A stretch of 64,000 nucleotides of DNA from IMGVR_UViG_3300044972_002389:124001-188000, one strand, 5' to 3'; positions 1,439-49,586 are shown, counted from the stretch's first letter. The notes: a model not told the origin generated them from the letters alone. Made by a program: numbers and translations.

Positions 1439-1639
1439 ATGACACTTTCTCATTGTTACAACACACGGCTAATCAGGATGAGTATTCAAGAAGCCAACAG
1501 TCGTATCTGTTGGTGTGCTGATAATTTTGGTGACCGGGATATCAAGTGGACTGTGCGATGCCACGACAGAAGTCGTTATGAATGGTGGTTTACAAATAAG
1601 GATGATTTAATTTGGTTTGGCCTTGTTTGGGAAAGTTGA
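1439..1639 (+). CDS. Trp-rich small protein family member (FxxxEDxxxFxLTW family)
   Basis: WCADNFG ... FTNKDDLIWFGLVW. Confidence 0.8.
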   Translation: MTLSHCYNTRLIRMSIQEANSRICWCADNFGDRDIKWTVRCHDRSRYEWWFTNKDDLIWFGLVWES

Positions 1640-1700
1640 CTGAACAACAGGGTGTGTTAAGTTTCAGATTGTTGAAACACTCGTGTATGGAGTAGGAAAA

Positions 1701-1979
1701 ATGAACACTCGCGTTTCTGAGTCTCAGCGTCGGGAAAATTCTCGAGCTATTGCTCGTAGGGATAAATGGCGTCAACAATATGTGGTTGTGGTGAAGGCTA
1801 TTCGTGAACTCAAAAGCCAAACTCGCGGCCGGCCATATGATCCGGTGATCAAAGTGCAACTGCGTACAATGAGGCAGCTGGCTTGCGACATGATGTTTGA
1901 ACGGACGCATTACATCCGTTTTGATCTGGTGAATACAGCATATCCTTATGCAGCTACAACACTGGAACAAGCTGCATGA
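1701..1979 (+). CDS. hypothetical protein
   Basis: RBS-like AGGA before ATG; ATGA overlap with the next gene. Confidence 0.7.
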   Translation: MNTRVSESQRRENSRAIARRDKWRQQYVVVVKAIRELKSQTRGRPYDPVIKVQLRTMRQLACDMMFERTHYIRFDLVNTAYPYAATTLEQAA

Positions 1980-2491
1980 ACAAAGAAACTGTGTTAATGC
2001 AGGAGGTAATTGTAAATTATCACCCGCAATTCGCTGACAGCACTCAACTTCGTGAGATCGGCATGTTGCGGCCAGAGATTTTCAAGGTGGAAATGCTGAT
2101 TGAAGAATGTCTGGCGGCATGGGGTCCTTACAACTTGGTCAGAGGGGATCATCAAGATTTCAGTGATGGAAGTGATTGTAAAACTGCAAGTATTCGATCA
2201 GAACCGGTTAAAGCTGGTACAGCATCTCATAAAGGTGAAATCTCAGGTGTACAAACCAGTGCTGGTGTTGTCAAGCAGGGAGCATTACGGTGTGTAGTTT
2301 ATAACCCTTGCGAAAACAATATCTTGTATTTTTACTTACCCAAAGAGTTTTGGACACAAAATATCAATCGGCATCCCACAACTGGTATGGGACGGATCTT
2401 TTTCACGTATAATCGTAACACAATGGTAATTCCCAAACTTATTCAATATCAAGTGAATAATTTTGAAGAATTAGCAAGGACCACAGGGTAA
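1976..2491 (+). CDS. hypothetical protein, possible PD-(D/E)xK nuclease fold
   Basis: E-rich helix (EMLIEE) followed by DFSDGSDCKT, a D...DxK arrangement. Confidence 0.4.
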   Translation: MNKETVLMQEVIVNYHPQFADSTQLREIGMLRPEIFKVEMLIEECLAAWGPYNLVRGDHQDFSDGSDCKTASIRSEPVKAGTASHKGEISGVQTSAGVVKQGALRCVVYNPCENNILYFYLPKEFWTQNINRHPTTGMGRIFFTYNRNTMVIPKLIQYQVNNFEELARTTG

Positions 2492-2496
2492 CAAGC

Positions 2497-2682
2497 ATGC
2501 AGAACCTGGGTGCAGAACTTTGGCCCCACAGAGTTGAAACTCTGGGGGGCAGTGATCAAGCTGGCATGCGTGGTTGGCTTGAGCGGAACGTGGACTGCAC
2601 TGCTTGGTTCTTTGCAGCAGCCAATGTTGTGTATTTTTCGCACAAAGAAGATGCTATGCGATTCAGTTTGATTTGGACATGA
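2497..2682 (+). CDS. Trp-rich small protein family member
   Basis: WLERNV ... FSHKEDAMRFSLIWT. Confidence 0.8.
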   Translation: MQNLGAELWPHRVETLGGSDQAGMRGWLERNVDCTAWFFAAANVVYFSHKEDAMRFSLIWT

Positions 2683-2891
2683 AGTATTGGGCAGCAACCA
2701 CGTTGGATGAGCCCAGACGTCAGGAAATGTCACGCTGGTGCAACCAAAGTTTTGGCTACACTGGGTGGATGGTTCACCCCCAGTTTGGGCAATGTGAGGA
2801 AGAATGCTATCTCAAATGGAGTTTTTGGTATCAAGCGGATGTTGTTCTTTTCACCTTGGTTTGGGATGTCGCTGCCAATGAAGATAAGTGA
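2679..2891 (+). CDS. Trp-rich small protein family member
   Basis: WCNQSFG ... FWYQADVVLFTLVW; ATGA overlap start. Confidence 0.8.
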   Translation: MKYWAATTLDEPRRQEMSRWCNQSFGYTGWMVHPQFGQCEEECYLKWSFWYQADVVLFTLVWDVAANEDK

Positions 2892-3079
2892 ACCAACGTG
2901 GGACAAAATTATAGCCTATTACCAAACAAAATCTCACATAGATGATTATAATTGGGCGAGCTTCAAACAGTGGGTATGTACAACCTATAACGTTGATAAA
3001 GTCTATTTGGGTGTTGAGGTTGAACTTGTTTTTTATCTCCCAAGAAGATGAGGCTGTGTTCGCATTAAGTTGGCTATAA
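2878..3079 (+). pseudogene. Trp-rich family member frameshifted at a T6 run (3029-3034)
   Basis: MKISEPTW...WVCTTYN...ELVF; removing one T gives ISQEDEAVFALSWL*, completing the family motif. Confidence 0.7.
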
Positions 3080-3277
3080 ATGGGCCCTACACCGTGGAGC
3101 CACTTGCCTTATGAAGTTACCTTGCCCATCAACTCAGTTCACAATCTGTTGAAGATCAGCATCTGGTGCAACAACAACTTTGGTGACCAACCCATCAAAT
3201 GGATGTATATTGGGCAAGGTCGCTGGTTGTTTCCTTCAGAGGAGCAAGCTGCTGAGTTTGCGTTGATTTGGACATGA
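3080..3277 (+). CDS. Trp-rich small protein family member
   Basis: WCNNNFG ... FPSEEQAAEFALIWT. Confidence 0.8.
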   Translation: MGPTPWSHLPYEVTLPINSVHNLLKISIWCNNNFGDQPIKWMYIGQGRWLFPSEEQAAEFALIWT

Positions 3278-3331
3278 ACAAAATTTGACAGCAGCGATAG
3301 CTACCTGTTTTGGCTGCTGACCGTCAGTTGA
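3278..3331 (+). pseudogene. Orphan 3' remnant of a Trp-rich family gene
   Basis: TKFDSSDSYLFWLLTVS* lies in frame right after the TGA of 3080-3277 and matches the motif register. Confidence 0.5.
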
Positions 3332-3363
3332 CACAAACCAAATTGGCCTGCATAAATTGGAGT

Positions 3364-6465: not shown

Positions 6466-7677
6466 ATGAGCAAGTTCAGTTGCCCTGTGGTGCGTGTGGC
6501 CGCAGTCGAAGAACATCCGAATGCGGATCGCCTTTCTCTTGTGCGCCTTGAAGGCCTCGGTTATCTCTGCATCGCAAACAAACTAGAGGATGGTAGCCCG
6601 CGCTACAAGCCCGGTGACTGGGTCGTATACATTCCCTCAGCCTCGGTGCTGCCTGAATGGCTGCTCAAGGACATGGGATTTTGGAACGAAGACGCTGGTA
6701 AGGGTGTGCTGGCAGGCAGTGATGGCAACCGTGTGAAGCCACTCAAGCTGCGTGGTATTTTCAGCGAAGGTGTGCTGTATGGGCTCATTGCATATGGTGA
6801 TGACGATTGCCTTTCTGCTGATTTTGGGTCGGCGACGGATGTACATGTAGTAGGCAAAGACAGTCTTGAATATCCAGTCAAGCTAGGCGAGGATGCTGCT
6901 GCAATCTTGGGCATCACCAGGTGGGAGCCGCCCATTCCCGCTGCGATGTCTGGTGAAGTTGCCAGTGTTGCTGAGGCTGCTCTTACCTACGATTTTCAGC
7001 GTTGGGAGAGCGTGCCTGACATCTTCGAACCTGGTGAGGTGGTGGTGGCCCAAGAAAAAATTCATGGATCTTGTACCATCATCCAGTACTTCCCAGGCAT
7101 GGACCATCCCGAGATGTTCCCCGACCATGCAGGCTACCGCAGCATCACTGTCAGCAGCAAGGGACTAGGCGGTCAGGGTTTGGTGTTCAAGAACAACGAA
7201 GCCAACGCCAACAACCTCTATGTGCGGGCACTTGGCACACTGCTAGCCGACCATGACCTCGCCGGGCTCCTCCACAGGATGAGCAAGGTGGACGGCGGTG
7301 CTCATCCGGTGGCTATCCTGGGAGAAGTTTTCGGCAAGGGCGTGCAGGACCTCGACTACGGCACCACTAAGCCCACGTTCCGGGTGTTCGACATGCGGAT
7401 CGGGCGGGAGTGGCTAAGTCCCGATGCCGTGGCCTACTGGGCAAAGGACCTGCCCTGTGTACCTACCCTCTACACTGGCCCCTTTGACCAAACTGCCATT
7501 GAGGCTGTGAGAGACGGTGTCACAACGGTGGGTGGCACCAATGTGCGGGAAGGTGTGGTGGTGCGCAGCCTGGTTCCCACCGAGCATCCCCTGCACGGTA
7601 GGAAAATCTGCAAATTCATCTCTCCGGCGTATCTGCTCCGCCGAGTGAAGAACGGCGAGGCAACGGAGTTCAACTGA
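6466..7677 (+). CDS. RNA ligase, DRB0094/Rnl5 family (N-terminal OB/tRNA-binding-like domain)
   Basis: N-terminal HPNADRL; nucleotidyltransferase motifs EKIHG, GEVFG, FRVFD, REGVVV, KFIS. Confidence 0.9.
   Translation: MSKFSCPVVRVAAVEEHPNADRLSLVRLEGLGYLCIANKLEDGSPRYKPGDWVVYIPSASVLPEWLLKDMGFWNEDAGKGVLAGSDGNRVKPLKLRGIFSEGVLYGLIAYGDDDCLSADFGSATDVHVVGKDSLEYPVKLGEDAAAILGITRWEPPIPAAMSGEVASVAEAALTYDFQRWESVPDIFEPGEVVVAQEKIHGSCTIIQYFPGMDHPEMFPDHAGYRSITVSSKGLGGQGLVFKNNEANANNLYVRALGTLLADHDLAGLLHRMSKVDGGAHPVAILGEVFGKGVQDLDYGTTKPTFRVFDMRIGREWLSPDAVAYWAKDLPCVPTLYTGPFDQTAIEAVRDGVTTVGGTNVREGVVVRSLVPTEHPLHGRKICKFISPAYLLRRVKNGEATEFN
7582..7677 (+). repeat. Copy 1 of a 96-bp diverged direct repeat (RNA ligase 3' end)
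   Basis: Ungapped 79/96 identity to 8086-8181 (hand count). Confidence 0.9.
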
Positions 7678-8193: not shown

Positions 8194-8472
8194 ATGACCG
8201 AAAACTATATTCTCTTGAAATGGGGCACACTCAAGGGCTATCGGGTAGCTGACAACCCTGTGGCGCAAGGTTTGATTAAACAGTACATGGAGTTGGGTGC
8301 CAGCGCCATGCACCAACAGGACACTCCCGAACAAAAACAAATCATATGCGAACTGCTGCCTGCTCTGGCGTGCCCGCGCCGTGCCTTCCCCAACCCATAC
8401 GACCCCACAGGGCTGCTGCACTGGATCGCAACCCAGGAGCCGGTCATTCTCGGACGCGACCCCGCTGGCTAG
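8194..8472 (+). pseudogene. Chimeric ORF: phage gene 5' half (to ...KQIICEL) fused in frame to the 3' end of a high-GC bacterial gene
   Basis: Abrupt GC and codon-style change at about 8355 inside the ORF. Confidence 0.65.
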
Positions 8473-9640
8473 CCGGCTGGCCATTTCAGGATGCCGCCAT
8501 GTCACGCCGCTTTCTCGTTACCGGAGGTGCCGGCTTCGTCGGCAGCCATCTCGTCGCCGCCCTGCTGGACCAAGGCGCGGAGGTGGTGGTGTTCGACAAC
8601 CTGCGCACCGGCCATCGCGAAGCCGTGCTCCCCGGCGCCACGCTGGTCACCGGCGCGCTGGAGGACCCCGATGCGATCGCGTCCGTGCTGGCGCAGGGGC
8701 CGTGGCATGCGGTGTTCCACTTCGCCGCGCTGTCGCTGGTGGGCGATTCCATGCGCGACCCGATCGGCTATCTCTCGGCCAATGTCGGCAACGGCCTGCG
8801 CCTGTTGGAGGCCTGCGTGAAGCACGGCGTGCCCCGCTTCGTGTTCTCCTCCACCGCCGCCCTGTTCGGCACGCCAGACCGCATGCCGATCGACGAGGAA
8901 ACCGCGATCGACCCCGGCTCACCCTACGGCGAAAGCAAATGGATGATGGAGCGCGCGCTGGGCTGGGCCGAACGCATCCACGGCATGCGCTCCGCCTGCC
9001 TGCGCTACTTCAACGCCGCCGGCGCCGACCCGCAGGGCCGCCTGGGCGAGGACCACACGCCGGAAACCCATCTGATCCCGTTGGCCATCGACGCCATGCT
9101 CGGCCGTCGCGCCGAACTCGCCGTGTTTGGCACCGATTACGACACGCCGGACGGCACCTGCATCCGCGACTACATCCATGTCACCGACCTCGCCGCCGCC
9201 CACCTCGCGGCGCTGGAGCGGCTGGACCACGCCAGCGTCACCTACAACCTCGGCACCGCCGCCGGGCATTCGGTGCTGGAGGTGATCCAGAGCGTGGAGC
9301 GCGTCAGCCGCCGCCCGGTGCCGCACCGCTTCGCCCCACGCCGCCCTGGCGACCCCGCCCGCCTTGTTGCCAGCCCGGCGCGGATCATGCGCGAAACCGG
9401 CTGGCAGCCGCGCCTCGCAGCACTGGATGACATCGTCGCCACCGCCCTGGCCTGGCGCGAAGCCCATCCGCGCGGCTACGGCGGATGAGTTACCGCATCC
9501 CGGCGCATCGGCCTGTGCGTGTTCTCAGAAGTGCATTTTTCACCTACTTATGTCCTCATCCGCCCAGCCGCCGCAGCGAGGACCGCCACGCCATGAGCCA
9601 GCCTGCCGCGACCACGGTCGCCAAGAACCTGGGCGCATGA
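8356..9640. other. Foreign high-GC (~70%) bacterial DNA segment
   Basis: Sampled 60-nt lines are about 75% GC against about 50% in the flanks; both ends cut genes; no transposase or terminal repeats seen. Confidence 0.9.
8499..9488 (+). CDS. galE: UDP-glucose 4-epimerase
   Basis: LVTGGAGFVGSH, FHFAALSLVGDS, FSSTAA, YGESK, LRYFNAAGA, GEDHTPETHLIP, DGTCIRDYIHV, YNLG. Confidence 0.97.
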   Translation: MSRRFLVTGGAGFVGSHLVAALLDQGAEVVVFDNLRTGHREAVLPGATLVTGALEDPDAIASVLAQGPWHAVFHFAALSLVGDSMRDPIGYLSANVGNGLRLLEACVKHGVPRFVFSSTAALFGTPDRMPIDEETAIDPGSPYGESKWMMERALGWAERIHGMRSACLRYFNAAGADPQGRLGEDHTPETHLIPLAIDAMLGRRAELAVFGTDYDTPDGTCIRDYIHVTDLAAAHLAALERLDHASVTYNLGTAAGHSVLEVIQSVERVSRRPVPHRFAPRRPGDPARLVASPARIMRETGWQPRLAALDDIVATALAWREAHPRGYGG

Positions 9641-9709
9641 CGCTGGAAGTCCTGCATGGAGTTTCCCAACCAAGAAACTTATCTGCAATGTTTGCTCACA
9701 TGGAGTTGA
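9641..9709 (+). pseudogene. 3' remnant of a Trp-rich family gene cut by the galE segment
   Basis: RWKSCMEFPNQETYLQCLLTWS* matches the family register. Confidence 0.65.
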
Positions 9710-10331: not shown

Positions 10332-10460
10332 GTGCTATTGCTGATTGAACTCATCGGTGCTCTGGTGCTCATTGGCGTATGTGCCTATGGTGCCAGCAAA
10401 CTGATCGAAAGTTTCTACGATCGCAACCGAACCCCTCCCGACCGCAAGGACCCCAACTGA
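10332..10460 (+). CDS. small single-pass membrane protein (42 aa, not in the ORF track)
   Basis: GTG start; LLLIELIGALVLIGVCAYGA hydrophobic stretch; abuts the SPFH gene. Confidence 0.6.
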   Translation: MLLLIELIGALVLIGVCAYGASKLIESFYDRNRTPPDRKDPN

Positions 10461-10461
10461 T

Positions 10462-11382: not shown

Positions 11383-11388
11383 TCAAAC

Positions 11389-11416
11389 AGAAAGGTGGGT
11401 GAAAGCTCACCTTTCT
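11389..11416 (+). terminator. stem-loop, probable terminator
   Basis: AGAAAGGTGGG-tgaaag-CTCACCTTTCT. Confidence 0.55.
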
Positions 11417-11418
11417 CC

Positions 11419-11446: not shown

Positions 11447-11450
11447 ACAG

Positions 11451-13033: not shown

Positions 13034-13038
13034 AGGTT

Positions 13039-38900: not shown

Positions 38901-41900
38901 CCTGTAGGGGTTTGATCTCCCCCTGTGGCTGCTGAGTTGCCCGCTGTAACAGCGCCTGCCCAAGATGAAGGAGGCACAAGGCTTCGTATCCATTCATAAA
39001 TGTCAATGCTGATTCCTGGAGCAATTTGTCCCCAATGTCTCCGGCGGTAGCTGTCTGTTCCAATTTCATAATCAATAAACCTTGTTGTGCTTAAATCCCA
39101 CCAAGTTTGCCCCACTTGGTTTGGGCCCCACGCTGTAGAGGGGTCAACTTGATACAATCTTGAATCTCCAGCATTATAGCTCGCTGGATCCCAGTGTGTG
39201 CGATATGTTACTTCCTCATTTACAAGCCCTGGCAATGCACCTTTGCTGGGGTCCCAAATATTCAAATGAGCTAGTGTTTGTAATGTTGTTTTGTTATAAA
39301 GTGTGCTGGTCAATAATAGGCTGGTGTCAACTTTCTTGTCTTCTCTGCGATATTCAAACCAGACACCATATTTTTGATAGACTTTCCAAGGTTCATCTTG
39401 ATTACCATCAACATAGGCAAAATCTCTTTGTGTCCAACCACCAGGAGGGGTTGCGTTATTGAATGCAGCATATGTGGGAAATCTTATACTCCAGTATTGT
39501 AACACTTGTCCATTGGCACCAGTAGCAGAGGTGGTTGCCTGCACATCAAAAGTATTCCTAGTGACATTGAAAACTGAAAAAGTACCATCCAGTCTACCAT
39601 TTACCCCTGTAACTCCGCTCAATACAAGGATGTTGCCATTTTGCAGATTGTGAGGCAAGCTGGTTGATATTGTTGTTTGATTCAATGTTACAGGAGTAGT
39701 TTGTTGAATTTGCCAGGCTGGCCGGCATACTTTGTAAATGTTCCATCCAATAGCAGTGTCAATAAATTGCCAAACTCTGTCATGTGCCTGCAAGGGAGTA
39801 TTTTTAGTTTCAAGAGTTTGAGAGAGACTAAACAACTCTGCTTGATCTTTGACATAATAAGTGGCCTCGGAAAATAACACGTATCCGCTGTTTGGCAAAT
39901 CCCCTGGGGCTGAACCGTAGTGGCTTCTCAATGAGAAGTTTGGCGTTGCCTCACTTTTATACAAGACTCTACTGTCTTTGGGGGTTATTGTAATTGTGTC
40001 GTCATAAGCCAAATCTTCAATAGAGCCAGAGAAAAACTCAACCAACTGCGGATTACTTCTCACTTCAGTTTGCAGTAGCAGCACGTCAATGCCGTGAATA
40101 AGTTCGTTGCTGCCATAAGTACCCAAACGGAAAGCGTACTCTTCGTAGTAGCTAAAGCTTTCATTGGCATCAACCAGTTGAGTGTTTCGCAACAAACTAT
40201 CAATAGTGCCTTTTGTGCCTTTTTGTTTGATCATGCCTTGATAAAATTGAAACTGTGTGGTTTCATCCACAAGGAGATTGGTCAAATATTCGCGTTGTTG
40301 ATAGCCCACTAAGTGAGTAGCCAACATGTTATATCTTTTAGGCAAGGCTTGCGACAGTGCGCTGGTGGCATTTGTATGCATCCCTGTGCTGTCGCTGTAA
40401 TTGTAGGGAGTTGGCACATCTATGTTGTATAACTTGCGAATATCGTCAACAGTTTTTTCAAAGTTAGCTAAGATCTGGTTATTGACAATTATCCGATCAC
40501 CAATGGTAGATGTGGTTTGTGTTACTAGATAACCAGGCGCCTCAAGACGGCCTGCCCAGTCCATGCTCTTGTAAGTCTGTATCTTGAATCGGCTTTGTCT
40601 TACGTCAAACAGTGGGTCATACACAATATCGCCAAAAATTGTTTTGTTTTGGAACAGGAGTGCATGTTCAAGGCCAGTAGTGTAGAGTCTAATGCCAAAA
40701 ATGCCTTGATCATTCAAAGGTCTTACTGAAACTTGATCATCAATGCGCAAGAAATCTATATTTTGGACTTGAATTGGTCGTCCGCCACGATCTAAAATCG
40801 TGTAGCTGCCATTTACTATGCCGCCGATGTTTTGAATAGTTCCAAAACTTGTGACAAATTTTGTTTTGAGTGCCAAAGGACTCAAGGCAATGTAATTGCC
40901 TGCTGCCCAAGGTCCTTGACTCCAGAACAAGAACTCTCGGCCGCTCAGGCTCCAATCTTGCAATTGGCCAGTGGTGCTGGAATATTCATCAAAAATCCAA
41001 CCTTGGCTGACTTGCCAACGCCCCAAGCTTACCAAAAAGTCAAATACATCTTGCTGTGTAGGCAAAATGGTACCATACGGCACTTTTTTAACAGATGGCA
41101 ACCCCAGCTTGTATTCAATAACCTTGATTTTGTCTACAATCACTGTTGTTTTTGGACCAGTAAGGTTACTGGGAATTACATAAAAGTTGGGATCATAGCT
41201 GTCGTATCCAATGACTCGGTAACCCTCAGATCCTCTATATTCCACAATTACGCCGCTATAGAAGAACTCTTTTAAGCTGGCACTGCGTATGAGATTGTTG
41301 GTCACATCTTCTTGGGGGATCAACAAACTGTCGTTGGAGCTTAGACCAAAGCTGTCAACCAAAAGCTTAACACTTGTGCCATCAATAAATCCTCCAGCTC
41401 TGTATCCTAGAGTTACATCACTGTTGCGGATAACATTACCAAAATATTCTGTGACGGAACGACTGTCATTTATCAAATACTCACTTATCCAGTGTTGAAT
41501 GCCGCATGATCCATAATAGCTTAAGTCACTGCTTAAGGTTGTTACATTTTGTGGATCTTCACGATGAACAAAAATGTCACTGTTGCTGATTCTTTTCCTG
41601 TAATCCTTCCAAACCCATTGACTGTTGGTTTGTGTGGCAAAAATCTGTTGGGCCCGTGGGCCGTCCCAGAGGTATTCAATAAATTGCGCTGGCTTGGCCA
41701 GATATCCTATCTGCGCCCAAATTTGGTCACTGTCAACTGCTGTAAGCCAGACATTTTCCAAAGGACCGCGGTCCCCAAATTTCCAATCGGCCCGGGCTTC
41801 AATTTCGCTAGGCAATGTGGTGACTATGCGAGCTGGACCAGGAGGCAACAGTTGCCCAAATTCGTCCACTGGCAAATATTGCATCAACCCAGGACGAGCA

Positions 41901-44900
41901 TACGCCGGATCAATTCCCTGTCGTTGTCCTTGGCGTATCCTGCCATCTCTTAAATCATACCACAATTGGGTGTTGCCACTGGTGTAAGGTGCGGCACCAT
42001 ATTCTGCATTCCACCAAAGTGGTTGCTGACTGAAGCCCAACATTTCCCAAGGGCAAGAGTTGGGGCGATCAGTATCAAAAAAGAGAAAATAGATACCGCG
42101 CCAATGACCAGGCACTGGGTTGTTTTCTTGATCAGTGCAACTGCTGTAATTCCAACTAAAGGGATCATCTATTTTGTAGGTTGTGTTCTTAAATGCATCC
42201 AACTGATTTGTTGTTAACCAACGTTCAAAAACTGGATACAACATTGTTAACTGATCTTTGTAAGAGTAGTTTGTGGTTCTCCACTTGCCAGAAAATATCG
42301 TTTTGATATCAAGCTTTTGCACACTGTCAGGATTTCTGTAGCTGGCTGGCAGAGAGTTGAACAAATTTACTTCCAATTGCATCCAAGCTCTAGCCACAGG
42401 ATGCGTCAACAGTTGAGGATCAACGGTGCTTGATTGCTGGTCAGCTATTGTTCCCAAGTCAGCACCGTTAAAATCTTGTAATACAACAACTGCACCATTG
42501 TGGCATCGGAGACTCAAGGGACTGTTGGGCTGGGTGACATCAAAAAATGCTGTTGGCACAAAACTGGGGGTGACTCCCAGCCGGGCTGCGCTTGCTGGGA
42601 CAAATGTGGGTGTTATTGACTTTTCACTGCAATATCGGCCAGGAACGCCGTCAAAGCCGCTCATTGCCCAAGGACTGCTAAGTGTTTTGCCGACATTTAT
42701 GGATTTCAATGCCTTATCTAGCCATTCACTAATGGGATTGGCCAAAGTCAGGCCTCCACTGTTGAATAAGTTAACTAAACTGTTGATGTATTTGTTGTAA
42801 AAGCGGAGATATTCTTTTTGTGACCATTGCATAACACCAATGGGATCCAACAATGCATTACTGCTGGTCAAAGCAGATGTTTGTGCTATGCTGTTCAAAA
42901 TCATGGTTTTCAACAAAGGTGCACGATGTTGAAGTATTACGGTTCCAAGACTTTGGTTTTGTGCAGTATCACGCCAATTATTTGCACCAATTATATTGCC
43001 AATAATATTTGATTGGTTACCAATAACAGTAATCAAATGATTGATGATATTTTGCCTTGTGATCGTAGAGACCTCAAGGTTATTGGGATTGGCTTCAAGA
43101 TTTTTAGGAATTTCAAAATAGCCAGTTGTTGCTATGTTGGTAATGTTTTGCCATGTTTTTACCACTACATTGGAATTGGGCTGCACACTGTTTGCTAGAG
43201 TCAAAACTTTGCCACTTACAGTGTATTGATCAGGAGTCAACAATACACCGCTTACTTCAACATTTATTGCACTAGGACCAGGAGCACCTGTCCCAGGTGC
43301 TTGATCCAATGTGAATGTTTTTTGACTTTCTTGTGTATAAAATTGATTCACCACATATTGTCTACTCAACACAGGGCTTTTGAACCAATTGTTTTGATAC
43401 ACTGGTTGAGTAGTAACAGGATCAACAGTTTGCCAAAACTTGAATCCGCTGATGTCTACTCTTAAATTATTGGGTTGGTATGTCCAAGTGTTTTGACTCA
43501 ATGTGTTTTCAAATGTTAATTCATTTGCTGAAACCAGCAAAGAGCCTTGGTTTATTGCAGCCAGTTGACTTGGATCATAAGAGAACAATGATGATCCACT
43601 AAAGCTGCTGAGCGGATAAATGCTGGGATCACTCAAACTGTTGCCGTCAATGTCAAATAATTCAAATAAGGGACTTTGACTGTCCACAGTTTGTTTCCAG
43701 CTTTGTGCACTTACCCAACTGTTCGTGCTGCTTTGAAATCTCAAATAAGTGTCAAAAAATCTGTTAAGAGGATTTCCGCTGGCCACATACAGACTGTCAT
43801 TGTTTTTGGGCGCACCTGTAACATCACTCTGGTTTGGCAATAATTGTAAGGTCAGCTTGTTATCGCTGCGCAATCCGCTAACTCGATAAATTCGATTATT
43901 GGCTTGACCGTCTACTAAGTTGGTGAACAAAATTGTCATGCCATCGTCAAGACTTATGCCGTCGACCAATAAGGGATTGCTGTTGCTTTGGCTTCGTCCA
44001 ATCAAACTGCCTAAGTCAGTGGTGAAGCTATCAACTACTGTAACCCTACCTCTACCAATAGTGCCAAAATTCCAGAGTTTAGTGGTTTTGTCAAAACATA
44101 TGATAGGATACTTGGCAACTAGCGCGTTAACATCTTGCAAGAGTGTTTGGCTTTGCACCAATACATCTCTATGGAACCAACGGTTTCTGATACTCCAGGG
44201 ATTTTGGTTACTGCTGCCGCGATGCATAACAACATACGCAGGTGTAACCAACTTATCAACGCCGTCCCAAGGAGTGCTGTCGTATTCTTTGGGATTGTCC
44301 CAGCGTATCTTGATACTGCTGTCTGTGTCGTCAACAAAGTAAATTTTTCTGCCCACGCCTTCAATAATCAACTCACGATCTCTAAGAGCTATATCCAAGT
44401 CAAGAGTAGGTTTGATTTTTAGCCCAGTGGAAAACACAAGGGGGTGTGTGGCGCCATTTATTATAGATGAAGGATTATTGGCAATTGCGTATGTGCCAGC
44501 ATATACATATGCTGATTCATTACTAACAGAGCTTAGGTCTGTTATGTCCAATAGCGTAATAGTATCTGGTCCATCACTTAACCAAACATATTCTTGAAAA
44601 TTCAACCACATGTCCACATCACATGGTAAACCAAAGCTGTAGTATTCTTGTTCAAACAAGCGATTATGATCGTTAACCAACGCACCTTGACTGCGCAACT
44701 TGTTCAACAAATCTTCATAAAACAAAATGTGCGAAACTGTGTCACTGCCTTGGCTGCGGCTTATTGCTGTTGCCTCAACTTGATAATCTTGGCGGGATTT
44801 AGAGGTCTCTACGACATAAAAATCCTTTTTGGGATTATACCAACTGGGCATTCGACCAATATAGTTGTTCAAATATTCAACTTTTTCAGGTTGAAACAAA

Positions 44901-44992
44901 TGGTCAGCTGTGGCTGCGAAAAATTTACGAAGGATATCGGTTTGTAATACCTCGGGTAGCAGATCGCTTATTCTACGTTTTGTATCGCTCAT
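32939..44992 (-). CDS. Giant (4017 aa) virion structural protein, baseplate/tail associated
   Basis: Uninterrupted 12-kb ORF coupled to the baseplate wedge gene; repeated GDG..T..F.L...V..NG...DY beta-modules. Confidence 0.8.
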   Translation of the reverse strand: MSDTKRRISDLLPEVLQTDILRKFFAATADHLFQPEKVEYLNNYIGRMPSWYNPKKDFYVVETSKSRQDYQVEATAISRSQGSDTVSHILFYEDLLNKLRSQGALVNDHNRLFEQEYYSFGLPCDVDMWLNFQEYVWLSDGPDTITLLDITDLSSVSNESAYVYAGTYAIANNPSSIINGATHPLVFSTGLKIKPTLDLDIALRDRELIIEGVGRKIYFVDDTDSSIKIRWDNPKEYDSTPWDGVDKLVTPAYVVMHRGSSNQNPWSIRNRWFHRDVLVQSQTLLQDVNALVAKYPIICFDKTTKLWNFGTIGRGRVTVVDSFTTDLGSLIGRSQSNSNPLLVDGISLDDGMTILFTNLVDGQANNRIYRVSGLRSDNKLTLQLLPNQSDVTGAPKNNDSLYVASGNPLNRFFDTYLRFQSSTNSWVSAQSWKQTVDSQSPLFELFDIDGNSLSDPSIYPLSSFSGSSLFSYDPSQLAAINQGSLLVSANELTFENTLSQNTWTYQPNNLRVDISGFKFWQTVDPVTTQPVYQNNWFKSPVLSRQYVVNQFYTQESQKTFTLDQAPGTGAPGPSAINVEVSGVLLTPDQYTVSGKVLTLANSVQPNSNVVVKTWQNITNIATTGYFEIPKNLEANPNNLEVSTITRQNIINHLITVIGNQSNIIGNIIGANNWRDTAQNQSLGTVILQHRAPLLKTMILNSIAQTSALTSSNALLDPIGVMQWSQKEYLRFYNKYINSLVNLFNSGGLTLANPISEWLDKALKSINVGKTLSSPWAMSGFDGVPGRYCSEKSITPTFVPASAARLGVTPSFVPTAFFDVTQPNSPLSLRCHNGAVVVLQDFNGADLGTIADQQSSTVDPQLLTHPVARAWMQLEVNLFNSLPASYRNPDSVQKLDIKTIFSGKWRTTNYSYKDQLTMLYPVFERWLTTNQLDAFKNTTYKIDDPFSWNYSSCTDQENNPVPGHWRGIYFLFFDTDRPNSCPWEMLGFSQQPLWWNAEYGAAPYTSGNTQLWYDLRDGRIRQGQRQGIDPAYARPGLMQYLPVDEFGQLLPPGPARIVTTLPSEIEARADWKFGDRGPLENVWLTAVDSDQIWAQIGYLAKPAQFIEYLWDGPRAQQIFATQTNSQWVWKDYRKRISNSDIFVHREDPQNVTTLSSDLSYYGSCGIQHWISEYLINDSRSVTEYFGNVIRNSDVTLGYRAGGFIDGTSVKLLVDSFGLSSNDSLLIPQEDVTNNLIRSASLKEFFYSGVIVEYRGSEGYRVIGYDSYDPNFYVIPSNLTGPKTTVIVDKIKVIEYKLGLPSVKKVPYGTILPTQQDVFDFLVSLGRWQVSQGWIFDEYSSTTGQLQDWSLSGREFLFWSQGPWAAGNYIALSPLALKTKFVTSFGTIQNIGGIVNGSYTILDRGGRPIQVQNIDFLRIDDQVSVRPLNDQGIFGIRLYTTGLEHALLFQNKTIFGDIVYDPLFDVRQSRFKIQTYKSMDWAGRLEAPGYLVTQTTSTIGDRIIVNNQILANFEKTVDDIRKLYNIDVPTPYNYSDSTGMHTNATSALSQALPKRYNMLATHLVGYQQREYLTNLLVDETTQFQFYQGMIKQKGTKGTIDSLLRNTQLVDANESFSYYEEYAFRLGTYGSNELIHGIDVLLLQTEVRSNPQLVEFFSGSIEDLAYDDTITITPKDSRVLYKSEATPNFSLRSHYGSAPGDLPNSGYVLFSEATYYVKDQAELFSLSQTLETKNTPLQAHDRVWQFIDTAIGWNIYKVCRPAWQIQQTTPVTLNQTTISTSLPHNLQNGNILVLSGVTGVNGRLDGTFSVFNVTRNTFDVQATTSATGANGQVLQYWSIRFPTYAAFNNATPPGGWTQRDFAYVDGNQDEPWKVYQKYGVWFEYRREDKKVDTSLLLTSTLYNKTTLQTLAHLNIWDPSKGALPGLVNEEVTYRTHWDPASYNAGDSRLYQVDPSTAWGPNQVGQTWWDLSTTRFIDYEIGTDSYRRRHWGQIAPGISIDIYEWIRSLVPPSSWAGAVTAGNSAATGGDQTPTGSVKGADYPYVLASERNESGQYTNAYYFWVKNKTTVPNVPDRKISVASLSQIVESPQTQNQSWWAAISSTGALLANIGSFLDENNTVWQVNYTSRENVDKIYKEWTLLRPNDPLSTPTLDLWSKMCDSLVEFNNVGNSVPNLRLPEMSKYGMLTRPSQSWFKDGITARRAFVKKINSLLSSSSVPPLDDPDRLGWLQYFQSVEPQPLQKNTKANARVATTTALDTVYYPGENGKGATLTYNGSSYSALVVDGITVNLGDRIIVKNQNPVTLTSSIVTQTPNQNGIYDVVDIGSLNNPWILMRSADFDSIDDNLIDAQVLVLEGASQLLPTTYIQNNKNILKLGIDPLEWQIVRPVKGILPCNWDYYVATLAARDALIPSLIPGNKVLVDVSAATNNRWTIWLYQGQNQFSLERMQAWDTNQVWYLVDWYASGISADTLIGATVATLADRDTLVVDSGTLVKVLNTGNGRWNLFEYTPDSETLWTVVGVQNGNLQLSDNLYDYEKYSMGFSGGSYAVDYQGWEYDTRLELSYILQGLWPENNKAVGLLKVDSDVNERNMVFFELVSHVLAEQNFVDWCFKTSFINLKGFSQQLLSSAYYDPSKIDSLEKYIQEVKPYHVVIRQFVDYRVVSDYWESNSSDLDNPPYIDLNNNVSILNVSNPVDLAILSGDTIYKPWYDNYKASSGALIETVTLTGNGSTKSLQLSTSTKPENVLVYWNSKLSQAWNLRPGDNSIIDLVFVPNTNDVVQAYVYASSYLERKTFIGDGISQIVSMTNPITWQFTQVRWNNLLTNDYEINLDDSTLVELNFTPGVGDIVTVTVFDIANLSVRSTRTKIVLDRLACVPAEDYYSPGYSENTVPNRFIDTIEEMKALTNLPNGEIIKVIYDNIGLWSLFVFNQGIFELVGYQLDNGAADRIQQLYQPTPSMPPPNDPLLISGCAPKGTVLDGLDFNLNGRWGEPVWDGVLGWDNTSQEVDRLFDQYINGGARPQYWVFKGDGLQTKFALPQAPQAPNDLRVWVNGNLQNTPLNWTVKNWITAVDVANQGLGYSVNDILSVSGGTYTIPAQLKVVNTSLTGAILKIEVVFPGAYTLTPSGTAVQASGGSGVNATFVLRWGGTSLEFALAPLSAVAKPNIWVAEAGSTFESALGGTLDAVYDGQGLSRPHVEGNHPEELFPLQGKETLIIDVANQPTVGFGNVLSESWLGDSITDRFYIGQPVFSAADIIVSVGGILKTLGPTSDYVYDPSSNSIVFVFPPVGSVVITSFGFGGATPGLGNWSIVNQGIDYNLNDTIVLSDTSQSYTSTTVLVTAIRATAVNVNQPGSGYKVGDLLYFKYGSGTQTLVIKVDSTTAFGGVAGQITAVSIVNQGYYTQPSISQNEWYTNGTGIGGLITPQWGVASILPLTRGSYLNKNVGLQQVGVTISGGAPGTGTGFSIANYSSHIQETKTVVFDITSFVITMDQPIGANTILMTWNGVPTVSFGVNPADNRQIGLGFTPLPGDTIVILVYSSQYQSLQKLQSLVVTLPLLTYPLNLNTPNNPLSGFNPAQSNNALVYSNGKRLKPPYLLSAIGDNNTTAYNLAIFPDPGSFIQVWLNASVLPNTEYTLAGNQIIFTTAPSDKSFIYIEVADPVAQNYDYQIQGTNLLLASWAVVDGDTIVVRTWGEDSASAFYNDVWTGDSSNQYLFTNTPLEFQSVQVWLNGSSLSWILDYTIVKTGNSWYLKLGNHYTLTAADEIQAYYPTALPSKDGVAFRAVTNVYNDTQYLRLGNQDRTVLTQVLNWNDQEIFVANGDTLLEPDDKRPGVIWIEGERIEYFDKAPAASTAFPNQAVLRKINRGTLGTPGGISDKFVAQYWSSTGNSDLYPVTITNAGEWQAGMVNAYVIVDGKLQNDWMLVSNPSNAAPGFYLQFPSQTLAPIFEPPPAGNKNIGLIIFKQDWKTTAMSHPTTSVVRDGSVRQVIPGGYQWPYGGLGLQYSSTYQAQFLLSQPGSIPA

Positions 44993-47900
44993 TTCAATCT
45001 CAATTCAGTTTGATTTAGGCTGGGAACAATTAAAATGTCAGTGACCCTGGCACTGCTGATGAAAATTTCATCAGGTTGACATTTTATTTCAAATAAATCA
45101 CCAAAACTACTGTTTTGGTTTTGTGGAACAATCACTAAGGAATTCAAGATAGCCGGATTTTGTTGGTGAATGTATGCCGCAAGCTCAGTGAAAAAGAAGC
45201 TTTGACCAAAATCCCAGTTAGCGATACTGAAATAGTTGTCAATGTCTCGAATAATCCGGGCTTTTATTTCACTGTCTGTAATGCTTACACCAGAGTTCTT
45301 AACTACCTTAAATGATACTCGCAGTTCAGGATCAGCACTTTGTCCAAACAACAGCTTGTATTTGACTGGATGCCAAATCAATTGATCAGTCATCATTTTG
45401 TATGTGTCAAATTCAGCGAAAGTAATACGCAAGTCTTCAGGTGCTGGTGGCTGAGGCATAGGGTCTGTGGTTTTGCCTCTGGCAATCCAATTGCGCATAG
45501 CTGTATCATAGCTGCTGGTCAAAACATATGTGTCGATTATGTTCATGATTGCAGGGTCAACTCTTTTGCCTTTGTCTATAAAGTGTTGCCAACAATAATT
45601 GAGATCATTACGGCCCACTGCGGCTTTGTATGACGGTGTTACGTCAATTAAGCTGTTGTTACTAAATTGGTATTTGAAGAACAGCTTTTGATCTCTAACA
45701 TACGCTACCTCGCCATCGTTCCAACTCAGTGGGTTTGGTGGGTATTTGGTGCTCATGGAAATGAGATCGGTGAATATCTTATCAACAGTTGTGGGGGTCA
45801 AATAATCAAAACCATTTATTACTGTTGTTTTCCAAAAAACATAGGGAAAACTGCTGCCAGTTATTAGGCCTGTATCAAGGTCAATTTGTTGTTCTCGATC
45901 AGGGTCTACAATCACTTTGAATTCATCAGGATTGTCAACAATGCCATCAAAATTAGAGTCTTGAAACCTTACTTGCACTCTGCGGGGCTCAATATAGCCA
46001 TCTGGATACAATTGCTGTGATGCAATAGGCCAAAACCAGTCTTGAGAAAAGCTGAGATTGGTAGCTAAGTTGGTATTGACACGCAATATTTTAACAAAAT
46101 CCTGGTTGGCTAACCCTGTATTACTACTGATTACAGGTGAGGTGTTGATTGTATAAAACCTTACATCATTTACACTTTCAAAAACATATTTCAGGCCACG
46201 ACTGGTGATGTACCAGCCAAAGCCAGGCACATACTTCAATTGAATAAGCCAACTGGCATCTAAATTTTGATTAGCTGTGTTGCCTTGCTGTGCAAGAGAG
46301 AAGTCTGCGTCAACAGCCAAATTACTGGTGGAAATAATTTGCCACATGCCAGTTAGTTGGATATAACTGATGCCGAAGGAAAGTTTTTCATCCAAGGCAT
46401 TTTTGACTGCGTCTTTTTCAGCACTCAAGAGCACGTCTTTGAAACTGGGTATTACACTGCTTAGCATCGTTCCATTGGGCACAAAGCTACTGATAATTGC
46501 ATTACCAGCACTGCTGACACTGTTGCCTTCGTCCACGAGATAGCTGCTGGTTCCGTTGGCAAAAAACAAATAGCTGCCTTTCCGGATCCCATATGTTGTA
46601 TCTGGTAATGCCAAAACAAAGTCAACTGTTTGAGTATAAAAGTGAGCATTGGGAAATACAGTGTTACTGGGGTTTTGGTTTGTCCATTGAATATTGCCAC
46701 CACCGCGTTTTGGATATTTGGCTAGATAAAAGTCCCGCATATCGGTGTTGATTTTTCGTGAATCAACACTGCCTTGAATCAAGGGTTGAATGTAGGTGTC
46801 AAGGATTTGTGTGTTGTTGACATTTAAACTGTTGGGCACTTCAATGTAGGTTTCATGTTCTTCTTCAAACAAGATTCCATCGTCTGAAAACACTTTTGAA
46901 TTTTGATAAGTGCTAGTGGGATCATTTATATCAATGTAACGACTTTGGCCACTGTAAACACGGTTTACACTCTTGATCTTCAATGCTTGACTGCTGATCA
47001 AAGGGTAGACGTTGTAATCCTCTCCATTGACCATTCTGTTTTGGGAATAAAACACTGCTGGAGCACGTTCGCGTATAAATGCATTGCTTTCCCTGCTCAG
47101 GCTGTTGGCTACACTGCTTTGTAAATCAAATTGCATTTGCAGCAGATTTTGCGATGTACCATCGTTATCGCGATAATAACTCAGGCTCAAAGGAACACTG
47201 GATATATCTTGTGGTAAGATAGTATAGGTTAAATTGTTACTGGTCCGGAAGTAGACCCGTATCCGGCCAACTGGTATGTTACCAAAATTACCGTCACTAA
47301 ATTTGATACTGATACTGTCTGTGCCACTTATGTCGCGTGTAATAACTTGAAAAATATCTCTAGTAGATCGATTCAAGGAATTGTAAGCTATATTTGTGCC
47401 AAACAAGGCAGGTACTTTGGTCCATTCAACCAGTGTATTGCCCTGGTCATCAACTGTTTCAACCCACACATCACTTTCATTTACATTTAAGGCTGTTAAA
47501 TCAAGAACACGATTACTCAAAGGCTCTGACAGAACAAAATCTGTAAATGATAGGGTTCCTTGTTTGAACAAGCCAAAAAATCCTGTATCAGGACTGGCAT
47601 TGCCATTGCCATCGTTGCGATACAATACGCTCCAAGGCTGTATATAATTGGGAGTCTTTTCCCTATAATACCCAGCTGATCCCACAGTGATGCTACCACT
47701 TACACTGTTGACAAAATCAGTATTGACAAACTCAAAATTCATTTGTTGTCCGTTCACCACTCCGGTGAAGGGAAATGCAAGAGTGCGGGTCACTGTATTA
47801 TCTAGGTCATATCGCTCAACAGTGAGTCCGTTAACTGCCCCGCTTTTTACAGGCTGACCAAAAGGATTGACCTTGCTGAAGCTGGCATTTAAGACCAAGA

Positions 47901-48369
47901 TAAATTGTTCAAACCAATCAGGGTTGTTTGCATCATTCCAAATAACAGGCACATTGGCTAGATTGAAACCATTGGAGTCATAGATATTTTGATCAGTGAT
48001 TACTTGAGTTAACTTAACCAAACCCTGTGCAGCAATACAGCGTCGTGGGTTGTAGGAAATCAGCCTGGCAAGGCGAAAAATACTGTCACGTCGGGTAGCA
48101 GTATCGATGAAATTTTCCCGAATATTCAGATCCAAACGGAATGCCAAACTGGATGCCAAATAAGCCAAAAGTTCAATTATTGCGACAAATTCGCTGCTTT
48201 CAATCCAGTCGTTGAAATCTTCTGGATAATTCAAGCGGATGTAATCAATCAAAGCTTGGCGGATAGTATCATAGTCATAGGCATTAAAATTTACCTGACT
48301 CATGGCTTGATACAGCACACGCCAATCTTGTCCAAGGAATAAATTATTTTGTCGGAGGCTTTGACTCAT
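44989..48369 (-). CDS. Baseplate wedge subunit (T4 gp6-like)
   Basis: DFNDWIESSE..AIIELLAY...ENFIDTATRRDSIFRLARLISY, FSDGNFG, RMVNGEDY. Confidence 0.88.
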   Translation of the reverse strand: MSQSLRQNNLFLGQDWRVLYQAMSQVNFNAYDYDTIRQALIDYIRLNYPEDFNDWIESSEFVAIIELLAYLASSLAFRLDLNIRENFIDTATRRDSIFRLARLISYNPRRCIAAQGLVKLTQVITDQNIYDSNGFNLANVPVIWNDANNPDWFEQFILVLNASFSKVNPFGQPVKSGAVNGLTVERYDLDNTVTRTLAFPFTGVVNGQQMNFEFVNTDFVNSVSGSITVGSAGYYREKTPNYIQPWSVLYRNDGNGNASPDTGFFGLFKQGTLSFTDFVLSEPLSNRVLDLTALNVNESDVWVETVDDQGNTLVEWTKVPALFGTNIAYNSLNRSTRDIFQVITRDISGTDSISIKFSDGNFGNIPVGRIRVYFRTSNNLTYTILPQDISSVPLSLSYYRDNDGTSQNLLQMQFDLQSSVANSLSRESNAFIRERAPAVFYSQNRMVNGEDYNVYPLISSQALKIKSVNRVYSGQSRYIDINDPTSTYQNSKVFSDDGILFEEEHETYIEVPNSLNVNNTQILDTYIQPLIQGSVDSRKINTDMRDFYLAKYPKRGGGNIQWTNQNPSNTVFPNAHFYTQTVDFVLALPDTTYGIRKGSYLFFANGTSSYLVDEGNSVSSAGNAIISSFVPNGTMLSSVIPSFKDVLLSAEKDAVKNALDEKLSFGISYIQLTGMWQIISTSNLAVDADFSLAQQGNTANQNLDASWLIQLKYVPGFGWYITSRGLKYVFESVNDVRFYTINTSPVISSNTGLANQDFVKILRVNTNLATNLSFSQDWFWPIASQQLYPDGYIEPRRVQVRFQDSNFDGIVDNPDEFKVIVDPDREQQIDLDTGLITGSSFPYVFWKTTVINGFDYLTPTTVDKIFTDLISMSTKYPPNPLSWNDGEVAYVRDQKLFFKYQFSNNSLIDVTPSYKAAVGRNDLNYCWQHFIDKGKRVDPAIMNIIDTYVLTSSYDTAMRNWIARGKTTDPMPQPPAPEDLRITFAEFDTYKMMTDQLIWHPVKYKLLFGQSADPELRVSFKVVKNSGVSITDSEIKARIIRDIDNYFSIANWDFGQSFFFTELAAYIHQQNPAILNSLVIVPQNQNSSFGDLFEIKCQPDEIFISSARVTDILIVPSLNQTELRLK

Positions 48370-48399
48370 TCGATATGTGCCCTGTTTTATCTACTTGCG

Positions 48400-48405
48400 T
48401 ATTTA
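48400..48405 (-). promoter_or_regulatory. late promoter TAAATA
   Basis: Upstream of the gp6-like gene. Confidence 0.55.
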
Positions 48406-48437
48406 AGCGAGTTTTAACCACACATATAACTTAAGAT

Positions 48438-48833
48438 TTAGATAATAGTGGTTTCAACATTTCTGCGATCAAAATCAATTTGGAAAACTTCCACAATATC
48501 CAACGGTTGGTAGTAGAGATCCATCTGGAGTTGCAGGCCATTGTCATATTCAGTAAGTTTGATATCTCGTATTTGAACTCGACCATCAGCTGCCACTATT
48601 TGATAGCAGTCGTCAATAATCATCTGCAGGTTGTCAGCCACCATGGGTTCAAATAACATGTCCCAAATTATTGATCCAAAGTCTGGGCGCATGACTCTTT
48701 CGCGTTTCCTTGTATAAAACGCATTAACCAAATCTCTCTTGATAAGATCAAGATCAGTGTATTGTGTTTGTTTGATACTGGTGTCCACTGAACTATAACC
48801 AATGAACAATCGGGTGCGGGGTGCTACTGCCAT
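48438..48833 (-). CDS. Baseplate wedge/sheath initiator (T4 gp25-like)
   Basis: DLIKRDLVNAFYTRKRERVMRPDFGS.IWDMLFEP. Confidence 0.88.
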   Translation of the reverse strand: MAVAPRTRLFIGYSSVDTSIKQTQYTDLDLIKRDLVNAFYTRKRERVMRPDFGSIIWDMLFEPMVADNLQMIIDDCYQIVAADGRVQIRDIKLTEYDNGLQLQMDLYYQPLDIVEVFQIDFDRRNVETTII

Positions 48834-48839
48834 AATACT

Positions 48840-48845
48840 TATTTA
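48840..48845 (-). promoter_or_regulatory. late promoter TAAATA
   Basis: 6 nt upstream of the gp25-like start. Confidence 0.55.
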
Positions 48846-48853
48846 GAGAAGAT

Positions 48854-48881
48854 TTGACACTCTAAAATCTTGCCACAAAAT
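48854..48881 (+). promoter_or_regulatory. sigma70-type promoter, divergent from the late block
   Basis: TTGACA-N16-CAAAAT; ATG after 5 nt. Confidence 0.5.
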
Positions 48882-48886
48882 AAGTG

Positions 48887-49390
48887 ATGAATAAAAAACA
48901 TTTGAGTTTTGATGATATTACTGTTCTTACCTACAGTCTTTGCGATAATATAGAGGCGTCAGGTTGGCAGCCCTCGATTGTTGTTGGCATTACTAGGGGT
49001 GGCCTCCTTACAGCCAAAATGTTGAGTCATTATTGGAAAGTGCCTATGTGCACAATTGATGTGAGCTTGCGGGACTATACCTTATGGAGCGAAGATTTCA
49101 ATACCAATTTGGTAATTGAGGCATTCAATGGTCACAATCTTCTTGTGGTTGATGATATAAACGACAGTGGTGCAACAGGGATCAAGATCAAAAACACTTG
49201 GACCACTGTAGTGAACAGTTTGCCAGAACATCAATCATTATGGCCCAAAAACAATATCAAATTTGGCGTGCTGTTGGAAAATGAAGTCAGCTCTCACCAA
49301 AGTGACTTTTGGGGCTCAAAAATCAACAAGGAACAAGATCCCATTTGGTATGTTTTTCCTTGGGAGATCCAACGGGGCAAGGGTGATTGA
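48887..49390 (+). CDS. Type I phosphoribosyltransferase (xanthine/hypoxanthine-like)
   Basis: VGITRGG, PRPP loop LVVDDINDSGAT, WYVFPWE. Confidence 0.88.
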   Translation: MNKKHLSFDDITVLTYSLCDNIEASGWQPSIVVGITRGGLLTAKMLSHYWKVPMCTIDVSLRDYTLWSEDFNTNLVIEAFNGHNLLVVDDINDSGATGIKIKNTWTTVVNSLPEHQSLWPKNNIKFGVLLENEVSSHQSDFWGSKINKEQDPIWYVFPWEIQRGKGD

Positions 49391-49586
49391 AAAAACACAC
49401 AATCTATTGTTTCCTTGGAGCGTGAGAATGAACTTTGATGTGGTGGATTGGACACCTATGGACCATTGGTGTGTAGAGCATTTTGGCAATGAAGGTGTGT
49501 TGTGGAGCATTGGTTGGGAGAATGGCACGTGGGATTTTCAAAAATTTGAGGATGCAATGATGATGTGGCTGACATGGGTGAGATAA
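49383..49586 (+). CDS. Trp-rich family member
   Basis: WCVEHFG ... FQKFEDAMMMWLTWV. Confidence 0.8.
   Translation: MIEKTHNLLFPWSVRMNFDVVDWTPMDHWCVEHFGNEGVLWSIGWENGTWDFQKFEDAMMMWLTWVR

Follow-up and report, generated by a model that had tools for sequence, protein, structure and literature searches.

What does a large phage do with some twenty diverged copies of one small protein, and do these copies form a family at all? The question is raised by a 64,000-nucleotide stretch of viral DNA (IMGVR_UViG_3300044972_002389:124001-188000, "the window" hereafter, with positions counted from its first letter), which belongs to a 328,603 bp contig (IMGVR_UViG_3300044972_002389) of a T4-related jumbo phage of ~330 kb. 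An earlier note, made from the sequence of the window, had claimed that 19 genes in it encode Trp-rich paralogs sharing a C-terminal motif and that two remnants accompany them. We found that the 19 listed loci are one family, comprising 16 clear intact genes, the divergent gene 23467, and the frameshifted genes 2878 and 16524 (genes are named by their first position). Motif shuffles, leave-one-out profiles, and an external profile all bear out the claim of 19 paralogs. We refer to them as the Trp-core family. The genome as a whole has more than 19, because two additional members were found in another part of it.

One family of nineteen loci

The strict motif [FWY]x3[ED][EDQ]x3[FWYLM]x[LIV][TSV]W had eight matches in the window, all on the plus strand and all at listed genes, and no match in 50 shuffles of the window. 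Upon translation, the products of the 19 starts ended in F-x3-(E/D)(D/E/Q)-x3-(F/W/M)-x-L-(T/V/I/S)-W, with a tail of 0-17 residues. The description of all members as ending in an invariant 14-residue motif thus held for most of them; it did not hold for gene 23467, which lacks the terminal Trp, nor for the subfamily of genes 15804, 16045, 16277, and 16524, which runs 7-17 residues past this Trp. The start codon is uncertain for three genes (11971 versus 11947, 19634 versus 19622, and 20404 versus 20410).

Profile searches were made against the 1,488 stop-to-stop open reading frames (ORFs) of the window. Leave-one-out profiles regained 14 of the 16 clear members, with E values from 6e-13 to 1e-3, the weak cases being gene 20622 (E 0.01) and gene 20404 (E 0.09). 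With an external profile built from alignment A3 (107 proteins of other genomes plus gene 3080), all 16 were recovered at E <= 4e-4, and members overall ranged from 1e-17 to 5e-4, against a best E of 0.009 in 20 residue-shuffled ORF sets; the exception was the tail of the frameshifted gene 2878 at 0.055. Because the profile E values stand clear of the shuffled-ORF control, we regard the 19 genes as real members. A chance motif is ruled out by the window shuffles together with this control. The A3 profile found no further members in the window. The members are as follows, with A3 profile E values unless stated otherwise.

1439-1639, plus strand: family member, 66 residues, E 6.9e-16, strict motif
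2497-2682, plus strand: family member, 61 residues, E 5.1e-9, ortholog P0009
2679-2891, plus strand: family member, 70 residues, start overlapping the stop of the preceding gene, E 2e-11
2878-3079, plus strand: family member frameshifted in a poly-T run, strict motif in the tail, tail alone E 0.055
3080-3277, plus strand: family member, 65 residues, the one modelled, leave-one-out E 3e-10
11971-12255, plus strand: family member, alternative ATG at 11947, E 5.4e-7
15804-16031, plus strand: family member, first of the tandem subfamily, E 3.8e-14
16045-16284, plus strand: family member, tandem subfamily, E 1.9e-17
16277-16531, plus strand: family member, tandem subfamily, E 3.8e-16
16524-16800, plus strand: family member, tandem subfamily, frameshifted in the T8 run 16658-16665, halves E 3.1e-4 and 4.7e-5
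19634-19873, plus strand: family member, alternative ATG at 19622, E 1.1e-8
19875-20210, plus strand: fusion of 111 residues, N-terminal fragment of gp23 (the major capsid protein) followed by the family domain, domain E 1.1e-4
20201-20413, plus strand: family member, 70 residues, E 3.2e-10
20404-20631, plus strand: family member, the weakest intact one, E 3.7e-4, leave-one-out E 0.09, orthologs P0019-P0024
20622-20879, plus strand: family member, 85 residues, E 1.4e-11, orthologs P0003 and P0007
21466-21774, plus strand: family member, 102 residues, with an N-terminal extension, E 3.4e-6
22063-22329, plus strand: family member, 88 residues, E 2.4e-16
23467-23763, plus strand: divergent member without the terminal Trp, E 4.8e-4
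49383-49586, plus strand: family member, 67 residues including 8 Trp, away from the main clusters, E 1.4e-14

The next ORF after the listed genes (E 0.23) has 123 residues and lies at 22644-23015. It carries an internal F-x3-QDA-x2-F-x-x-L-W followed by ~24 residues, and a distant relationship to the Trp-core family is possible.

Two members are broken in poly-T runs, within regions 3019-3036 (gene 2878) and 16651-16673 (gene 16524). The run in gene 2878 is T6 in the window and in locus L001, and T8 with an open frame in three related contigs (L002-L004). For gene 16524, the T8 run (16658-16665) was also found in L069 and L072, contigs of two other samples; a further locus with T8, L044, seems to come from the window's contig itself (window positions 10336-23097). 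The breaks are not random assembly errors. They could be natural on/off variants or slippage sites that restore the frame.

The two remnants claimed in addition to the 19 genes received no statistical support in the A3 profile search.

3278-3331, plus strand: claimed remnant, no profile match, unsupported
9641-9709, plus strand: claimed remnant, 22 codons between two stops and ending in LLTWS, E 8.9 for the ORF that holds it, not significant

[quoted passage not shown] The epimerase gene, in the stretch 8346-9709, forms an island of 63% GC amid 45-55% GC, which suggests that it was acquired recently.

Fold, conservation, and spread of the family

To describe the protein itself, we modelled gene 3080 with AlphaFold2 (AF2) on the alignment of 16 paralogs. 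The model was confident (predicted local distance difference test, pLDDT, 89.3; predicted template modelling score, pTM, 0.71) and showed the beta-alpha-beta-beta-alpha order that had been proposed for the scaffold, with a strand at 11-14, a helix at 20-34, strands at 42-45 and 48-51, and a second helix at 54-64. Foldseek matches in BFVD agreed: ~20 models of "uncultured Caudovirales phage" proteins were returned at probability 1.0, with template modelling (TM) scores of 0.6-0.8 (for the kind represented by A0A6J7WFP6, A0A6J5L4C8, and A0A6J5LU01, TM is 0.65-0.86 and identity 16-32%). Because these match the gene 3080 model, the fold is common across the family. The BFVD proteins are apparently members of the same family, and as entries with no name or function attached they do not amount to a described one.

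No relative was found by Foldseek in the PDB (best E 0.56, query-normalised TM <= 0.48). The nearest PDB folds, all weak matches, were ferredoxin-like domains, which have one strand more. In HMA, UreE C-terminal, and PII-like domains the first five elements come in the same order, but the Trp-core protein ends with helix 2 and hence lacks the fourth strand, and it has no metal- or ligand-binding motifs. With three strands modelled, TM <= 0.48, and E >= 0.56, we do not place the family in the ferredoxin-like fold.

Column conservation over 252 unique domains shows what is held constant. Helix 1 carries a W in 97% and a C in 74%, with a G just past the helix; strand 2 has a W in 87% and strand 3 an F in 96%; helix 2 begins with E-D(84%)-A and ends with F (95%), L, T, and W (96%). 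This bears out the claim of a conserved aromatic core (W, W, F, F, L, W) with the remainder variable, and the conserved aromatics are best read as core positions. Large insertions, the longest 17 and 25 residues, were found only in the hairpin between strands 2 and 3. Among the conserved columns there was neither a catalytic-looking set of polar residues nor a basic position, and columns 1-9 of the profile, at the N terminus, showed no conservation. In viral loci the domain stopped exactly at the stop codon in 122 of 145 unique domains, and these 145 are mostly acidic (median isoelectric point 5.6, net charge -2.8). Trp makes up 6.0% of the family domains compared to 1.9% of large window ORFs. 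Each gene thus encodes a C-terminal domain of ~55-70 residues with this fold, held by a few residues, mostly aromatic, namely the W and C of helix 1, the W of strand 2, the F of strand 3, and F-x-L-T-W where helix 2 ends.

The family had been called uncharacterised, and our searches agree. Ten window members brought up no family match that passed the threshold. A set of 108 diverse members gave no match in PHROGs or NCBIfam and none in Pfam below E 0.003, where two isolated hits were at chance level. None of 16 members matched PADLOC, no PDB chain was matched by sequence, and a literature search found no paper describing the family. A known family is therefore ruled out in Pfam, PHROGs, NCBIfam, PADLOC, and the PDB, by sequence or by fold.

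Outside the window, a HMMER profile scan of 1.84 billion representatives (50% identity) returned 785 proteins at E <= 1e-3; among the 150 of these that were listed, nearly all have 55-100 residues and about ten are two-domain proteins; P0029 and P0041 are natural members of this kind. With a degenerate DNA motif for F-x3-EDA-x2-F-x-LTW, 66 stretches were found in IMG/VR and 3 in 596 Gb of genomes from bacteria and archaea, where we estimated a chance expectation of ~9. The profile matched in 65 of the 66 IMG/VR stretches, usually 2-13 times per locus (<=15 kb), and many of these loci come from contigs of 170-518 kb. The cultured soil phage Phosso of Sinorhizobium (469 kb) has 15 or more members in the interval 2.9-14 kb, where each is labelled hypothetical, and syntenic relatives of the window phage, one of them from a Tara sample, have 6-8 members in the same region. 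The first 50 kb of phage Atu_ph07 gave one marginal profile match (AUZ94850.1). Of the single sequences compared by tblastn to the genomes of 50,697 isolated phages, three had no match, one had a weak match that led to Phosso, and a Phosso member matched only Phosso. This implies that single-sequence BLAST is too insensitive for the family. Taken together, the family is large, almost confined to phages, nearly always tandem-clustered, and uncatalogued, and it is not peculiar to the window phage.

Two observations stand beside these counts. The only cell-genome stretch with a profile match (L011 39-221, E 2.7e-4) is on a contig of a Sulfuricella metagenome-assembled genome (NZ_DATKTK010000032.1); it might belong to a prophage or to a phage contig placed in the wrong bin, and so may hint at the host. 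The proteins P0025 (1,176 residues) and P0169 (505 residues), both called helicase-linked, contain 5-7 repeats (~25 aligned residues) resembling helix 1, W-C-x-x-N-F-G-D-K-E-x-W, and P0025 also has an N-terminal helicase domain. Their match spans profile positions 12-37 only, and we did not accept it as homology; the repeats could reflect convergence or a helix module in common.

Is the expansion a recent burst? The closest paralogs (15804, 16045, and 16277) are 39-46% identical and the others 20-40% over partial lengths. In related phages, single paralogs are each matched by an ortholog, and orthologs are kept between the window clade and a clade including the Tara scaffold. Since paralogs this diverged each have orthologs of their own, the expansion is old and no recent burst. 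The ratio of nonsynonymous to synonymous substitution rates (dN/dS) between orthologs was 0.12-0.39 for members (for instance 0.20 for gene 19634, 0.13 for gene 21466, and 0.12 for gene 23467, each versus locus L008, where the last has an 82% identical ortholog) and 0.04-0.16 for neighbouring enzymes, values that are rough because dS is saturated in many pairs. This indicates that members are under purifying selection but evolve faster than the neighbouring enzymes.

Early operons, capsid-protein fusions, and the proposed role

We looked to expression signals and to fused domains for indications of what the proteins might do. A sigma70-type pattern, TTGACA-N16/17-TAnnnT, occurs at 23 sites in the window versus 1.6 expected, 22 of them on the plus strand, mostly with TGCTA as extended -10 and placed ahead of blocks that hold family genes. 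The sites span 284-58095 (for instance 284, 5464, 7760, 9779, 11419, 14347, 16705, 19000, 22594, 26094, and 50378-58068), and an example at an operon head is the following.

14347-14374, plus strand: sigma70-type promoter, TTGACA-N16/17-TAnnnT pattern

The window has one T4-type late box. Generic promoter scans gave a modest excess (18 versus 10.0 and 16 versus 11.7 expected), and a generic terminator scan gave no excess in the window. Family genes lie in tight plus-strand operons, many overlapping the stop codon of the preceding gene. Shine-Dalgarno sequences are weak or absent before most members; since several bona fide genes are likewise weak, this is uninformative either way. The TTGACA-type motif probably marks early promoters of the phage, and we infer that the family sits in early operons driven by the host polymerase. 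Of the earlier note's roughly 20 copies in an early region, the copies themselves were confirmed, and their early type is judged from the sigma70-like promoters.

A subset of members is fused to pieces of the major capsid protein. Residues 1-56 of gene 19875 match positions 134-197 (of 376) of Pfam Gp23 with E 1.3e-6, and ORF residues 4-59 match residues 200-255 of S-WAM2 gp23; the gp23 stretch lies at window positions 19875-20045. Only this ~55-residue fragment matches; gene 19875 is not a full-length HK97-type capsid protein. Nine protein clusters keep the fusion, as do loci L006 and L008, and its conservation is stronger than that of other members (67% mean column identity among orthologs, with a dN/dS of 0.26 that shares the roughness stated above). 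Four other fusions were found in unrelated contigs (P0144; L023 4627-5004; L032 1750-1295; L081 1022-1330). Their N-terminal segments align with T4 gp23 ~88-134, around the Gol segment that we take to be residues 93-122, and the family domain follows; residues 1-39 of P0144 are 41% identical to T4 gp23 96-134, and in L081 the C-terminal part is family-like by eye and below the profile threshold. The gp23 part in gene 19875 differs from this Gol-like region. The family domain itself has no similarity to gp23, and its derivation from gp23 is ruled out.

According to a review, Gol is the most conserved part of gp23 and binds EF-Tu (PMC3014915). The likeness to the Gol peptide and Lit exclusion described there lies in the N termini of four members, which are homologous to gp23 around Gol. 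The difference is that the gp23 stretch in window gene 19875 is a separate one (S-WAM2 ~200-255).

Our preferred reading, held tentatively and at somewhat less than even confidence, is that the family forms a library of non-enzymatic proteins, made early, whose partners are proteins of the host or of its defences. The proteins would be made early in infection, and each paralog would be a putative binding module, rather than an enzyme, with a host or defence protein of its own as target. The target would be set by the variable strand 2-strand 3 hairpin, by the variable surface, or by an N-terminal extension, and the outcome would be host takeover or counter-defence. Members with capsid fragments could act as mimics of capsid peptides, occupying host factors or sensors that recognise the capsid protein. 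The points that we count in favour are circumstantial: the proteins are acidic, non-enzymatic, and fast-evolving, their hairpin is variable, and capsid fusions occur.

T4 offers parallels in Dmd, Stp, Arn, and IPI*, small early proteins that are often acidic and act by binding a host protein. These are single-copy genes, unlike the arrays, and no sequence similarity, nor fold similarity in the PDB, was found to them. In phage T6, SegB-driven segmental amplification of anti-defence loci is reported to be tied to immune evasion (PMC13096335). That case is alike in being a tandem amplification in a T4-type phage, with HNH genes near the arrays here; its repeats are recent and identical, whereas the Trp-core copies are 20-46% identical.

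Several points weigh against a library of host or defence binders. No link to a known anti-defence protein was found, even though Pfam and the PDB, which gave no match, hold many such proteins. Paralogs that are old and conserved as orthologs agree with fixed, specialised roles no less well than with an arms-race library, and the dN/dS values are rough, dS being saturated in most comparisons. The decoy idea covers a minority only, because most members have no capsid fragment. Lastly, AF2 modelled the gene 19875 fusion with 12 orthologs at a low-confidence pLDDT of 50. A bolder version, in which the domain would be a new effector scaffold in wide use among phages, with arrays that are early inhibitors of host immunity or machinery and a subclass that displays the phage's own conserved capsid peptides, Gol included, to blind or pre-empt capsid sensors, strikes us as unlikely as a whole. 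If true, capsid-peptide self-mimicry would be a new principle of counter-defence.

The recurrence of capsid-fragment fusions would also be expected if members were packaged head proteins injected with the DNA, like the internal proteins of T4, with the capsid fragment targeting them to the prohead. T4-like and jumbo phages do carry paralogous small head proteins, and IPI* of T4 is an injected anti-restriction protein. We nevertheless consider this improbable: the genes have sigma70-type promoters ahead of them and are surrounded by genes for nucleotide metabolism and RNA repair rather than by a structural module, most members have no capsid fragment, and the common N-terminal targeting sequence of T4 internal head proteins was not seen in the 252 domains, whose columns 1-9 are unconserved.

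We give just as little credence to small nucleic-acid-binding regulators, whether transcription or translation factors or RNA-binding proteins. A small alpha/beta sandwich resembles RNA-binding modules, the weak Foldseek neighbours include ferredoxin-like RNA- and metal-binding domains, and aromatics are plentiful. Bacillus phage G, moreover, has a lineage-specific expansion of ~35 zinc-ribbon proteins that were proposed to be transcription factors (PMC7824862). The Trp-core family is mostly acidic with no conserved basic position, as given above, and its aromatics, lying in hydrophobic conserved columns, read as core, all of which argues against such a role. Phage G is alike in that it too is a jumbo phage and holds one small domain in tens of copies; it differs in that the fold is another one and that the Trp-core family lacks a Cys4 site and is spread over many phage lineages. 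The two CxxC pairs of a zinc ribbon are absent, the single conserved Cys position being held in 74%. The protein family and its fold are new to the catalogues searched, whereas a small accessory domain in many copies in a large phage was already known.

Less probable still are factors of capsid assembly or folding, either chaperones or competitors that poison the capsids of related co-infecting phages. Two different parts of gp23 are fused, and the gene 19875 orthologs are under purifying selection, as this would predict, but the promoters are of early type, there is no linkage to head genes, and ~19 diverged copies, mostly without a capsid fragment, would be left unexplained. That the genes are mere filler, decaying or selfish ORFs whose proteins do nothing, is very improbable, for although 2 of the 19 genes are frameshifted and one of these is polymorphic between strains, dN/dS is well below 1 even as a rough value, orthologs are shared across clades including the Tara scaffold, members occur in phage Phosso, the fold is predicted confidently, and 122 of 145 domains end exactly at the stop codon.

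Gene neighbourhood and meaning for large phages

The phage has no close DNA match among isolated phages, and the nearest relative of its ThyX is that of the jumbo Agrobacterium phage Atu_ph07 (47% identity). Neighbours of the family include two RNA ligases, a kinase-phosphatase, a Thg1-like enzyme, ThyX, an SPFH protein, an aldolase II, and an AAA ATPase, as well as HNH endonucleases, a NUDIX protein, a WYL_2 protein, and unannotated small ORFs. HNH endonuclease genes near the arrays lie at 12248-13030 and at 27388, where the L008 ortholog has Pfam HNH. No toxin-domain gene, as would mark immunity arrays of polymorphic toxins, stands beside the arrays among the annotated neighbours. A complete RNA-repair set (Rnl2-type ligase, Rnl1-type ligase, kinase-phosphatase, and Thg1-like enzyme) occupies 6466-7677, 14403-15620, 26127-27359, and 50968-51840, and the family arrays interleave with it. 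A region of this make-up would fit a role against host RNA-targeting defences.

Two further features lie nearby. On the minus strand, 30379-48369 holds two ORFs, 4,017 and 1,126 residues long, that Pfam does not recognise, adjoined by a 603-residue protein with a fibre-chaperone domain (Peptidase_S74); together they probably make up a giant tail-fibre module. A 142-residue ORF at 21041-21469 has a G-S-N-x-x-G-x-H-G-A-G-A-A motif, no Pfam match, and 84% identity to its counterpart in L008.

Large phages are rich in small early genes of unassigned role, and the Trp-core family is one of the more tractable blocks among them. It offers hundreds of clusters, a confident fold without a solved relative, arrays almost confined to phages, and a cultured pair in Phosso and Sinorhizobium meliloti. 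At minimum it merits a Pfam and a PHROGs profile, which would group thousands of "hypothetical proteins". The recurrent capsid-peptide fusions lead to a concrete hypothesis, an interaction with EF-Tu or with capsid sensors. Should the members prove to bind proteins of the host or of its defences, every array would amount to a ready-made list of inhibitors together with their targets.

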